64,000 nucleotides of DNA from Macrostomum lignano (GCA_002269645.1 NIVC01001159.1:175414-239413); one strand, 5' to 3'; shown: positions 19,827 to 63,843, numbered from the stretch's first letter. Translations and numbers: made by a program. Notes: a model not told the origin generated them from the letters alone.

Positions 19827-22800
19827 TTACTTCTTTTGCGGGGCAGAGCCTGCAATGGGGATAAAGCGGGCCAGATTGCAAGTGAAAACGAATTTGAATT
19901 CGCACTCAGTGACAACAACCAGCACCCGCCTACCGATCAGAGTCTGCTGGGTTGTCTCGCTGACCACAATGTTTGACATGCCTTGCAGGTCTGTGGAAAA
20001 TTGGAAGAGAAACATGGCGTCAAGGTTAACCAAATTACCCCAATGCGAATAACACTTCACTCATTTGACATCCCTGACTATCCCACAACATCCAGACTAT
20101 TGCAAACCATCCAGACTATCCCACACCATCTCAGACTATCCCAGACTATCCCTGACTATCCCACACCATTCCAGACTATCCCAGACTATCCCAGACTTAT
20201 CCCACATCATCCCTCATACTATCCCACACCATCCCAGACTTATCCCACATCATCCCTCATACTATCCCACACCATCCCAGACTTTCCCACACCATCCCAG
20301 ACGATCCCAGACCATCCCAGACTATTCCACACCATCCATATTATCTCACACCATCCCAGACTATCCCAACACCATCCCTCATACTATCCCACACCATCCC
20401 AGGCTATCCCACACCATCCCTGACTATCCCACACCATCCCAGGCTATCCCACACCAAGGTCCTGGCACTCACTCTCCAGCGAGGTGGTGTACACAGAATT
20501 GTGCCAGCCTCCGCCGCACTCCATCGAGGCGTCCCCGGCGCAGTCTTTGTCGCAGCTGGTCTGCAGGCCGGGCCCGTACTTGCCGAACTGCTGGCCACAC
20601 CAGCACTCCTTGCCGTTCTGAAGGCCGACGAACTTGAACTGCCGGTCCTGGCAGAGTTTCACGCACCGCTTGACGGTCATGGCGTCCGAGGTCTCGGCCA
20701 TGGTGGGCAGGTCTCTGTCGGCAGAGTCCTTGAAGCAACCGAAAGCAAGCTGGTGGATGGCTGCAAAGTTAAATGTTAATCTAATTAAATAACTTTGTTA
20801 GCAAACTGTACAAGAGATTTATTCAACTTAACGAGGATTGAAATTGGTTGGTTGTTAGCTTCCATCACCACTAACTCACCATCAGACCCAACTGTAGTCC
20901 AGATGTACTCGTAAGAGATTACAGTCGTGCCTCCAATAACGGTATTTGTCGTAGTAGATGTAGTTGTCCAGCTGCTGATGGTGGTGACATCGCCCAGGAA
21001 AATCTCTGTGACTTCGCCGGTGATTGACTCGGTGCTGCTGATGCCCTCGCTGATGATGATGGCATCTGGAGATGGGGCCAATTGGCGGAGTTGAGTCTGG
21101 TTATAGGCTTTCTAAACCAGCCCTAGTAATATCTAGAACCAGCCTGACTCACATCTAGAACCCGCCTCAGTCACATCTGGAACCAGTCTCAGTAATATCT
21201 GAAACCAGCCTCAGTCATATCTGGAACCAGCCTCAGTCACTTCTAGAACCAGCCTCAGTCATATCTGGAACCAGCCTCAGTCACTTCTAGAACCAGCCTC
21301 AGTCATATCTGGAACCAGCCTCAGTTATATCTGGAACCAGCCTGACTCACATCTAGAACCGCCTCAGTCACGTCACATCTGGAACCGGCCTCAGTCATAT
21401 CTGGAACCCGCCTCAGTCATATCTGGAACTAGCCTCAGTCATATCTGGAACCAGCCTCAGTCATTTCTGGAACCGGCCACAGTCATATCTGGAACCCGCC
21501 TCAGTCATATCTGGAACTAGCCTCAGTCATATCTGGAACCAGCCTCAGTCATTTCTGGAACCAGCCTCAGTCATATCTGGAACCAGCCTCAGTCATACCT
21601 GGAACCAGCCTCAGTCACATCTGGAACCGGCCTCAGTCATATCTGGAACCCGCCTCAGTCATATCTGGAACCAGCCTCAGTCATATCTGGAACCAGCCTC
21701 AGTCATTTCTGGAACCGGCCTCAGTCATATCTGGAACCAGCCTCAGTCATACCTGGAACCAGCCTCAGTCACATCTAGAACCAGCCTCAGTCATGTCTGG
21801 AACCCGCCTCAGTCAAATCTGGAACCAGCCTCAGTCATGTCTGGAACCAGCCTCAGTCATATCTGGAACCAGCCTCAGTCATACCTGGAACCAGCCTCAG
21901 TCACATCTGGAACCAGCCTCAGTCATACATGGAACCCGCCTCAGTCACATCTGGAACCAGCCTCAGTAATGTCTGGAACCCGCCTCAGTCACATCTGGAA
22001 CCAGCCACAGTCATGTCTGGAACCCGCCTCAGTCACATCTGGAACCAGCCTCAGTCATGTCTGGAACCAGCCTGACTCACATCTAGAACCGCCTCAGTCA
22101 CATCTGGAACCAGCCTCAGTCATGTCTGGAACCAGCCTGACTCACATCTAGAACCACCTCAGTCACGTCACATCTAGAGCCAGCCTCAGTCACATCTAGC
22201 CAGCCTCAGTCACAACTAGAATCGCTTTAGATTTATTCGGATGTTGAAGCTGGTTCTTTGTAATACTGAGTCGCCGCTCACCCTTGGTCAGCCCTGTCGA
22301 GTAGACGGTCTGCATCAGACTTCCGCCGCAATGCTGGCTGCTGTCGCCGTCGCAATTCATGATGCCCGAGCTGGCGTCCTGAATTTGGCCGTGCCTGCCG
22401 TAGCTGTTGCCGCAGCGGCACTCGTTGCCGTTCTGCACACCGAAAAATAGAAATCCGTAGCGCCTGCACAGCTTCCGACAGTTGTTGAGATTTGTCTTAA
22501 CCTTTCGCACCAGGAATGGCAAGTCGCGATCGGTCGTTTTGTCCAGGAAGGTGCCGAGACTGCTAAACTCATCTGCGGGTGGGTTTTTTACTTTAGGCAG
22601 TGTTTATTGTGTTTTTGAATTGAAAACGTAATGAATTGATGCTCAAGGGTTGCACAGGTATAACGGATGAGCCCACTGACACAAGGCTGGCGTCAGCTTG
22701 ACAGGAACGTCCCCAAGAGCCCCGGCGTCTCCACTCAACCAGTTCACTCCAGGCAGTCCCTCGGTGCAGTAGATAGCTGCGCCATCCTCCCACGCACTAT

Positions 22801-63200: not shown

Positions 63201-63843
63201 TGGTTCGCCGTCAACTGCACCACTCGCCTGCCAGCCTTGTGCCGGAAAAGCAACGGCCCGATGCCAACAACACAGCCTCATCTGCCTGGCACTTGCCCGC
63301 CAGAGTTTGTCCCCCAGTTTGACAGCTGCTACTTTGCAGCCAACAGCACAGTTCGCGTCTCGGCTTCGACTGCTCAGATCGAGTGCCAGAGGCTCTACCG
63401 CTCTAACCTAGTGAGCATACTCACCCAGAGCGAGCAGAACTTTGTTGCCGGCCTAATAAATAGCAAAGTCCAACAGTCGGGCACTCGTCGGGACTATTGG
63501 ATTGGCTTGCTGCGCAGCAGCACCGGAGGCTTCGAGTGGAACGACCTCAGCCCGCTGGGCTATGTCTACTGGAGCTTGAACGAGCCGTCCAACACGCCTA
63601 ACGAAAACTGCGTTGAAATGTACGAAAGCAACAAGAAGTGGAACGATCACTATTGCAGCAAGCTCAACTCGTACGTATGCAAGATGCCCAAACTACCGTC
63701 AACGGACTCGGGAATAACGACCACTACAACAGCTACCACCAGGACAACTCAGACCACGGTCAGTGGACAGACAAGGCCTACACAGCAACTTACAACAACG
63801 CGAACTGTTACTACACAGAGTCCCGGTGTCAGAGCTATTGCAG
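54241..63843 (+). CDS. Multi-C-type-lectin protein (mannose-receptor-like architecture), signal peptide + 12 CTLDs + Thr-rich stalk, 3' partial
   Basis: Signal exon 54241..54310 (MRIRLCTTSVFGALLLAACIAGT); further exons start at ~54662, 55205, ~55887, 56110, 56439, 57000, 57850, 58924, 59427, ~59865, ~60082, ~60604, ~60856, ~62513, ~62733. The junctions checked keep frame. Each domain has C..W..CY..W..A...C..L.SI, W(I/L)G(L/M/V/F), W.DG, and C..W..C..(Y/F)(I/V)C motifs; several have EPN + WND. Ends at donor gtgagg 63844. Confidence 0.92.
55530..55830 (-). mobile_element. tRNA-derived SINE with a CORE-like central domain (intronic)
   Basis: Minus strand reads gggggttgTAGCCTAGTGGttagggc (A box) ... 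GGTTTCGATTCtc (B box), then tgtgtccttgagcaggatacttaactctgcattgcttcagttcacccagatgtaaaatggg, which resembles the CORE domain of MIR-type SINEs (comparison from memory). Confidence 0.7.
57539..57791. mobile_element. Small foldback / MITE-like element (intronic)
   Basis: Ends atggggacgcttttata / tgtaaaagcgccccat, with internal inverted blocks (ttcatatcgcct / aggcgatatgaa). Confidence 0.55.
58183..58701. mobile_element. MITE with ~80-bp TIRs (519 bp, intronic)
   Basis: gaggatgtgaactaaagagtcagaatggagcccgaaacattgggtcccgatttctctacgccaatcccttcattttgagc matches the reverse complement of ~58622..58701; no clear TSD. Confidence 0.75.

Follow-up and report, generated by a model that had tools for sequence, protein, structure and literature searches.

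Three very large modular genes lie side by side in the genome of the flatworm Macrostomum lignano, and their arrangement raises the question of whether they form one glycan-recognition system or are simply neighbors. The window analyzed here is a 64,000-nucleotide stretch of contig NIVC01001159.1 (GCA_002269645.1; 175414-239413), in which the three genes occupy positions 19827-63843, counted from its first letter. Two of them, WSC-B and WSC-A, encode paralogues built of 13 WSC domains, and the third encodes a lectin with 12 C-type lectin-like domains (CTLDs). A reading made from the sequence alone (the sequence-only reading) had proposed that they constitute a co-regulated system. We find that the genes are real, already deposited, uncharacterized members of known domain families and that, with a probability of roughly 60%, they are neighbors but, on the evidence, independent extracellular glycan-binding genes. 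The sequence-only reading annotated the genes correctly, in a genome that had been annotated before, but over-interpreted them as a system.

Two proteins with 13 WSC domains each

The window was identical to contig NIVC01001159.1 across the 19,760 bp compared (100% identity), its position 54241 corresponding to position 229654 of the contig. Short, interrupted reading frames gave the stretch a eukaryotic character, and a search with the assembled WSC-B protein returned near-identical M. lignano proteins. In GenBank, the consecutive entries PAA71520.1, PAA71521.1, and PAA71522.1 on this contig cover WSC-B, a fragment of WSC-A, and the lectin, all three under the name "hypothetical protein." The ends previously given for the span were exact: the stop codon of WSC-B finishes at 19827, and lectin exon 16 finishes at 63843, where a GT donor follows.

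A WSC profile built from five clear units was scanned against all stop-to-stop frames and returned two sets of 13 units on the minus strand, one spanning 20480-31075 and the other 43549-51410. Pfam PF01822 recognized the domains with per-domain E values of 1e-16 to 1e-20 (60 to 73 bits for single domains, against a cut-off of 27.8) and matched 13 stretches in each full-length protein; profile scan and Pfam family together bear out the 13 + 13 domains originally counted. The exons of the two genes are as follows.

19827..32208, minus strand: WSC-B (PAA71520.1, BOX15_Mlig028452g1), 1,443 residues from the start codon; translation open throughout and equal to P0292
32208-32124, minus strand: WSC-B exon 1 (putative signal peptide, start codon 32208)
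31095-30808, 30359-30075, 29516-29232, 28831-28547, 27067-26783, 26550-26263, 26171-25884, minus strand: WSC-B WSC exons 1-7
25640-25356, 24070-23789, 23625-23344, 23148-22861, 22572-22282, 20760-20473, minus strand: WSC-B WSC exons 8-13
around 28021-28004, 27784-27740, 27647-27624, 25259-25041, 21072-20878, minus strand: WSC-B linker mini-exons
19990-19934, 19849-19827, minus strand: WSC-B tail exons (stop codon 19829-19827)
43114..51580, minus strand: WSC-A (BOX15_Mlig005686g1), with a signal-peptide exon, 13 WSC exons, linker mini-exons, and a tail; frame broken in this copy
51580-51505, minus strand: WSC-A exon 1 (start codon 51580)
51430-51143, 51059-50775, 50137-49853, 49314-49030, 48394-48114, 47596-47309, 47180-46893, minus strand: WSC-A WSC exons 1-7
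46780-46509, 45848-45573, 45500-45219, 45092-44808, 44715-44425, 43829-43542, minus strand: WSC-A WSC exons 8-13
48936-48922, 48759-48730, 48640-48605, 48510-48487, 46376-46218, 46024-45992, 44330-44181, minus strand: WSC-A linker peptides
43433-43347, 43164-43117, minus strand: WSC-A tail peptides, followed by the stop codon at 43116-43114

Every WSC exon encodes one domain, is in phase 1 at both ends, and has AG/GT boundaries, which is the classic arrangement for duplication via exon shuffling. Many introns of WSC-B (20069-32109) contain a minisatellite. Examples are (AGT)179 at 27077-27614, a 22-bp unit repeated 50 times at 21115-22212, and, at 31545-32109, an array with a 38-bp unit; these arrays also occur in the sister copy of the locus, with differing copy numbers.

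In the full-length proteins (P0292, read from its start codon, and P0284), a putative signal peptide precedes the 13 WSC domains, and the chain ends in a short hydrophilic tail. Each domain has about 94 residues and is joined to the next through a very short connector, with longer linkers after domains 4, 8, and 12, giving a 4 + 4 + 4 + 1 layout separated by three flexible linkers in a cysteine-rich protein of ~160 kDa. Hydrophobic, signal-like N-terminal peptides are present in WSC-A, WSC-B, and the lectin (MRFVLLLCLVAAVAS, MRPIVSGLLAAACLLGLFG, and MRIRLCTTSVFGALLLAACIAG), in agreement with the signal peptides predicted earlier for all three genes. Hydropathy likewise upheld the absence of membrane anchors from the WSC proteins: beyond the signal peptide, neither a transmembrane nor a C-terminal, glycosylphosphatidylinositol-type hydrophobic segment was found (maximum 19-residue hydropathy, 1.29 for P0001 and 0.99 for P0002).

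Alignment of 25 domains yielded the consensus GCYxD...RDLP...C...C...CFCGNxYGRYGK...C...C...CGG. Eight cysteines (four disulfides) and a CGG motif are features of the WSC domain (PMC9024836). Exactly eight cysteines are present in 24 of the 26 domains, the others being WSC-B domain 6 with nine and WSC-B domain 12 with six; CGG is found in 23 of 26, while domain 8 of each gene has CGD and domain 3 of WSC-A has CGA. In WSC-B domain 12 (22282-22572), cysteines 1 and 6 are both missing (GTFLDK, SSGIMNC). In the structure of yeast Wsc1, a disulfide links this pair (PMC9024836), and their being partners there argues for a coordinated loss and against random decay. For a single WSC domain, an AlphaFold2 model reached a predicted local distance difference test score (pLDDT) of 94.4, and Foldseek aligned it with KREMEN1 (template modeling score, 0.88), a Fusarium glyoxal oxidase WSC domain (0.85), and yeast Wsc1 (0.78). 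As modeled, the domain has the true WSC fold, PAN/Apple-like and wrapped by a long L5 loop.

N-glycosylation sequons are scarce in both proteins. WSC-B has none, against 10.2 expected from 5,000 shuffles, and WSC-A has 3 against 12.1, a count as low being seen in ≤0.04% of shuffles; all three WSC-A sequons fall outside the WSC domain cores. This depletion suggests selection that may keep the WSC domains unglycosylated. The linker between domains 12 and 13 (20878-21072 and 44181-44333) is conserved in both paralogues as a Ser/Thr/Ile-rich segment, IIS.GIS...I.G...EI..G..T.I...YxW. It had no Pfam match in either WSC-A or WSC-B and could be a small uncharacterized module.

The composition of the proteins also bears on an explanation in which they are structural components of a matrix, mucus, or adhesive, their WSC domains serving as disulfide-rich protein-protein or protein-glycan cross-linkers and not as recognition lectins. 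Their large size, 7.2% cysteine, and ~11% aromatic residues fit such a role, as do linkers of mucin type, Pro/Thr-rich (the second linker of WSC-A) and Thr-rich, and the existence of M. lignano paralogues that join WSC to discoidin (F5/8 type C) and VWA domains, a combination typical of matrix and adhesive proteins. The Wsc1 domain surface, moreover, has no sugar pocket but aromatic clusters that are implicated in clustering (PMC9024836). However, the M. lignano adhesive proteins Mlig-ap1 and Mlig-ap2 are of a different make-up and have no WSC domain (PMC6410801), and oligomerization domains such as VWD or C8 are absent from WSC-A and WSC-B. We regard a structural role as unlikely.

A lectin gene with 12 CTLDs

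The exon structure of the lectin was modeled by scoring all GT/AG combinations against a CTLD profile.

54241..63843, plus strand: lectin (PAA71522.1, BOX15_Mlig013028g1, 1,926 residues), exons 1-16 of 17
54241-54310, 54662-54831, 55205-55350, 55887-56026, 56110-56215, 56439-56903, 57000-57082, 57850-58083, plus strand: lectin exons 1-8
58924-59319, 59427-59623, 59865-59950, 60082-60509, 60604-60770, 60856-62428, 62514-62659, 62733-63843, plus strand: lectin exons 9-16

The spliced model has 1,840 residues, agrees with the deposited protein (P0289), and contains 12 Pfam Lectin_C (PF00059) stretches, the number of CTLDs that had been claimed. The window thus encodes a putative signal peptide, 12 CTLDs, the first of which begins about 8 residues past the predicted signal peptide, and a Thr-rich stalk. 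The EPN and WND motifs of calcium site 2 occur together in CTLDs 4, 5, 6, 9, and 10, and CTLD 12 has EPS with WND, while the other six are degenerate; the EPN/WND domains noted at the outset accordingly number five, with this EPS variant as a sixth.

The sequence-only reading had also called the lectin a membrane protein. This proved true from the contig beyond the window, although the anchor is not visible within the window itself. Exon 17 lies ~490-750 bp past its end (L006, 20247-20510) and encodes a transmembrane helix, ALVIGAVVLFLALLIGAVLAVFFY, and a tail of ~55 residues, both of which are also present in P0289 and P0133. The lectin is thus predicted to be a type I membrane protein with a single-pass helix. 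Its tail carries a run of seven glycines and the motif FSNPSF, which resembles the FxNPxY/F class of endocytic sorting signals.

Among proteins of solved structure, the lectin is closest to DEC-205, FcRY, PLA2R, and MRC1 (PDB sequence matches, E values of 1e-106 to 1e-37). A Pfam scan of the 1,840-residue model returned Lectin_C and overlapping CTLD-like families and detected neither a ricin-type Cys-rich domain nor a fibronectin type II domain (PF00040). From its sequence, we infer a design that resembles an endocytic receptor of the mannose receptor type but lacks two defining features of that family. Identity with the adhesive protein Mlig-ap1 was ruled out, as the latter has one CTLD midway in a Lys/Arg-rich protein of 5,407 residues (PMC6410801).

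Adjacency of the WSC and lectin genes

WSC-A and the lectin are divergently oriented, and their start codons lie where they had been placed, at 51580 (minus strand) and 54241 (plus strand), 2,661 bp apart. They are separated by the following region.

51581..54240 (2,660 bp), no strand: divergent intergenic region between WSC-A and the lectin; CT-rich low complexity at ~52560-53150; 94-95% identical to sister copy L002

Nothing pointing specifically to shared regulation came to light in this divergent region. The locus as a whole is present three times in the assembly: on NIVC01001159.1, on NIVC01000545/546 (L001, L002, and L005), and on a 41-kb contig with PAA47080 and PAA47081. The three copies share 88-99% DNA identity, with a synonymous divergence (dS) of 0.03-0.09, and are recent duplicates or haplotypes. 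M. lignano carries large recent genome duplications, with which a three-copy pattern is consistent. In comparisons with sister copies, the ratio of nonsynonymous to synonymous divergence (dN/dS) was 0.09 for WSC-B, 0.08-0.13 for WSC-A, and 0.16 for the lectin, and these low values (0.08-0.16) indicate that all three genes are under purifying selection.

In all three copies, WSC-A and the lectin stand head to head. This constancy, the spacing of 2,661 bp between the start codons, and the predicted nature of both partners as extracellular glycan binders are what could be expected of a functional cassette, in which soluble 13-WSC opsonins or bridging lectins would be expressed with a 12-CTLD receptor that captures them or their cargo, the 2.66-kb interval acting as a shared bidirectional control region. 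A protein of the protist Amoebophrya (P0046) that joins 6 WSC domains and 3 CTLDs in one chain points in the same direction. However, at a dS of just 0.03-0.09, the shared synteny of the three copies is uninformative on whether the linkage is selected, and the Amoebophrya protein lends weak support to a coupling of the two domains, since such mosaics are common among extracellular proteins. The intact paralogue WSC-B lies >20 kb from the lectin promoter. At two other multi-WSC loci of M. lignano, L003 and L004, no CTLD gene was found within 10 kb; the neighbors are a WSC/discoidin/VWA gene and a septin gene at L003 and a glutamate-receptor-type channel gene at L004. Finally, the sequon depletion speaks against a role of the WSC proteins as N-glycan ligands for an EPN-type lectin, as 0 or 3 sequons where 10-12 are expected leave little for such CTLDs to bind. 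We consider the cassette quite improbable.

A more elaborate version turns the scarcity of sequons into an adaptation. The WSC proteins would coat beta-glucan-rich particles, either diatom food or microbes, and phagocytic cells would internalize the coated particles through the 12-CTLD receptor, expressed from the same divergent control region, the lack of sequons hiding the free opsonin from a mannose-type receptor until cargo is bound. This chain of steps strikes us as more improbable still.

The proposal of a co-regulated system is unsupported: adjacency is its sole evidence and was seen to be conserved among three near-identical copies in M. lignano, the one species compared, two other WSC loci have no CTLD neighbor, and the WSC proteins are poor in sequons. 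That WSC-A and the lectin stand head to head is explained most simply as two genes that happen to be neighbors.

WSC-A is interrupted in this copy

The description of WSC-A as an intact gene of 13 WSC domains did not hold for this copy, which differs from the sister copy on NIVC01000545.1 by a 1-nucleotide and a 13-nucleotide deletion.

46709..46730, minus strand: 13-bp deletion (AAAGACCGGCGCG absent between 46720 and 46719) in the WSC-A domain-8 exon; frameshift
48385..48396, minus strand: 1-nucleotide deletion at the beginning of the exon for WSC-A domain 5 (which starts at 48394), from alignment to L005 (NIVC01000545.1)

Alignment of 46800-46480 to the sister copy L001 gave 95% identity with a single 13-nucleotide gap, and the frame switches inside the domain-8 exon. 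At the start of the domain-5 exon, the sequence is CAG/AATGAGG here and CAG/AAATGAGG in the sister copy (AAATG to AATG). Phase bookkeeping of the linker mini-exons indicated that this deletion loses the frame with either annotated splice form (that of P0002 or that of P0284). Because of the breaks, translation from the WSC-A start codon would end after four WSC domains, which explains why GenBank annotates on NIVC01001159.1 just a C-terminal fragment of 543 residues (PAA71521.1), whose first residue is a Met inside domain 9. In sister copies, the WSC-A proteins are intact (P0002, P0282, and P0284).

The 1-nucleotide change lies in a run of A and could be a long-read error; the 13-bp deletion is less likely to be one. 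The exons downstream retain a dN/dS of 0.13 relative to the sister copy, so that any inactivation must be recent. Either WSC-A has recently become a pseudogene or a truncated allele in this copy, or the assembly is in error here.

Origin of the WSC arrays

For 12 of the 13 positions, a WSC-A domain is closest to the WSC-B domain of the same number (mean identity, 63% on the diagonal and 43% off it). Since same-number domains match best, the 13-domain array predates the tandem gene duplication; WSC-A and WSC-B arose through an old tandem duplication, from a gene in which all 13 WSC domains were present. Judged by sequence divergence, the triplication of the whole locus appears to be much younger. 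A four-domain periodicity within the array was weakly supported (identity of 47-48% versus 43-44%) and was not retained.

The L003 locus (NIVC01002134.1) contains two further giant WSC genes, of 4,054 and 1,848 residues, head to head, in which WSC is joined to discoidin (F5/8 type C) and VWA domains. The WSC expansion in M. lignano is large and architecturally diverse. Outside flatworms, the best matches to the WSC proteins were hemipteran proteins with 10 WSC domains and a GH16 domain and cephalopod proteins with WSC and GH10, which align with 37-74% of the query at 27-33% identity; fungal WSC proteins are just ~25-30% identical. The sequence and literature searches made turned up no characterized animal protein of many WSC domains alone, as the sequence-only reading had surmised.

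Proposed function of the three genes

In the interpretation we favor, that of independent neighbors, WSC-A and WSC-B would be secreted, unanchored, multivalent lectins or agglutinins, in which 13 weak sites provide avidity for repetitive polysaccharides. WSC domains are beta-glucan binders in secreted fungal lectins and are also found attached to glucanases (PMC9252488; PMC9024836). Since the domain elsewhere belongs to beta-glucan lectins or is attached to glucanases and xylanases, our best guess for the ligand, by analogy, would be beta-glucan-type or other microbial or algal wall polymers. In the lectin, five or six CTLDs would keep a calcium site for sugars of the mannose, GlcNAc, or fucose type and would be followed by the Thr-rich stalk, one membrane helix, and the FxNPxF-like tail, so that the protein may act as an endocytic receptor of the mannose receptor type.

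Several points weigh against this interpretation. The function of all three genes is extrapolated from domain families, and the independence of the genes is a default position rather than a demonstration. The structures of Wsc1 and KREMEN1 have no obvious sugar pocket (PMC9024836); for this reason, and because the WSC domain of KREMEN is involved in contacts between proteins, the WSC proteins might bind proteins instead. In addition, many small WSC proteins of M. lignano are prostate secretions, according to PMC6953679 and the first two thirds of PMC5977470 Table S1, which opens a possible reproductive role rather than one in food or microbe recognition.

If so, the 13-WSC proteins would be secretions of the seminal fluid, cement or shell gland, or antrum, acting on partner tissue or on glycans of the egg or sperm. 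In the same part of Table S1, WSC proteins are abundant among the M. lignano transcripts that are limited to the prostate and socially plastic; the WSCD2-like Mlig-pro46 affects sperm competitiveness (PMC6953679), and RNA815_80.4, with two WSC domains, abolishes a prostate staining when knocked down (PMC4490696). Yet the WSC transcripts in the first two thirds of Table S1 (PMC5977470) measure 0.26-1.7 kb, whereas at least ~4.3 kb is expected here, so that, as far as that part of the table goes, the seminal-fluid candidates from the prostate in Weber 2018 probably do not include WSC-A and WSC-B. Identity with RNA815_80.4 was ruled out by its sequence in the supplement, which is that of a different, two-domain gene. 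The full-text literature searched, together with the supplements to Wudarski 2017 and to Grudniewska 2018, contained neither the gene identifiers, Mlig028452 included, nor expression data for Mlig028452. A reproductive role seems doubtful to us, about on a par with a structural one.

Should the functions that we favor prove true, they would extend the picture of glycan recognition in invertebrates. WSC-A and WSC-B would be the first studied animal lectins built solely of WSC domains and, with their 13 domains, a route to what WSC domains bind in animals (KREMEN, polycystin-1, and WSCD1/2). The 12-CTLD receptor would represent a flatworm mannose-receptor-like design without ricin-type and fibronectin type II domains. 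The annotation comes with one caveat: of the three genes, WSC-A is broken in this copy.

Other features of the window

WSC-A and WSC-B are separated by a block that is missing from the sister copy, as delimited by a break in collinearity with L001 (NIVC01000545.1) and by Tandem Repeats Finder.

33113..39100 (~6 kb), no strand: block missing from the sister copy, between WSC-A and WSC-B
33715-36796: 23-bp satellite (~3 kb), which with the following makes up the main content of the block
36891-37693 and 38698-38959: 18-bp minisatellites
39350-40340, frames on both strands: remnant of a Tc1/mariner-type transposase with a weak match to Pfam HTH_Tnp_Tc3_2, present in both locus copies
12458-13948, minus strand: single-exon open reading frame of 497 residues, rhodopsin-family seven-transmembrane (Pfam 7tm_1, E value of 8e-29), an intronless G protein-coupled receptor gene downstream of WSC-B
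1-7700, plus strand: BACK/Kelch-repeat gene (BACK at 1059-1556, Kelch repeats at 6310-6993)
2370-4199: fragment of a non-long-terminal-repeat retrotransposon (reverse transcriptase and RNase H), apparently inside an intron of the BACK/Kelch gene
1-450: coding-like tandem repeat of 63 bp, APDNLNASEQEPASHGVITES, with which the window begins

Comparison with known systems

In layout, WSC-A and WSC-B resemble the multi-WSC lectins of fungi, such as WSC3 of Serendipita indica and the WSC proteins found in the extracellular polysaccharide matrix of that fungus, which likewise are secreted, unanchored tandem arrays of WSC domains alone; PF01822, the eight cysteines, and CGG are common to both. WSC3 reportedly has three domains, in contrast to 13 here, and the M. 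lignano genes are animal genes with one exon per domain. The fungal lectins bind beta-1,3-glucan through multivalency (PMC9252488; PMC9024836, citing Wawra 2019).

With KREMEN1 (5FWS) and yeast Wsc1 (7PZ2), the M. lignano domains share the fold, the pattern of four disulfides, and the CGG motif (PMC9024836). These proteins, however, carry a single WSC domain in a membrane receptor (Kringle-WSC-CUB in KREMEN1 and WSC-Ser/Thr stalk-transmembrane segment in Wsc1), as opposed to 13 in an unanchored chain. The yeast-type sensor layout of Ser/Thr stalk, transmembrane segment, and signaling tail is not seen in WSC-A or WSC-B, whose C termini are hydrophilic. The prostate WSC proteins of M. lignano (Mlig-pro46 and its relatives, and RNA815_80.4) have the species, the domain family, and secretion in common with the proteins described here but contain ~1-3 WSC domains, with transcripts of <1.8 kb. 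Long WSC arrays in secreted animal proteins also occur in the WSC-enzyme fusions (hemipteran 10xWSC with GH16; cephalopod WSC with GH10). Their glycoside hydrolase suggests that the WSC array serves as a carbohydrate-binding module, whereas the M. lignano proteins have no catalytic domain.

The lectin is most readily compared with the mannose receptor family (MRC1, DEC-205/LY75, PLA2R1, MRC2/Endo180, and avian FcRY), whose members likewise are type I proteins with a long CTLD array, part of which has the calcium and sugar site, and whose short tail has an aromatic-NPx-aromatic-type motif, which FSNPSF resembles. It differs from them in having neither the ricin-type Cys-rich nor the fibronectin type II domain, in its 12 rather than 8-10 CTLDs, and in its Thr-rich stalk; identity is ~30%, and any orthology to the vertebrate family would be tentative.

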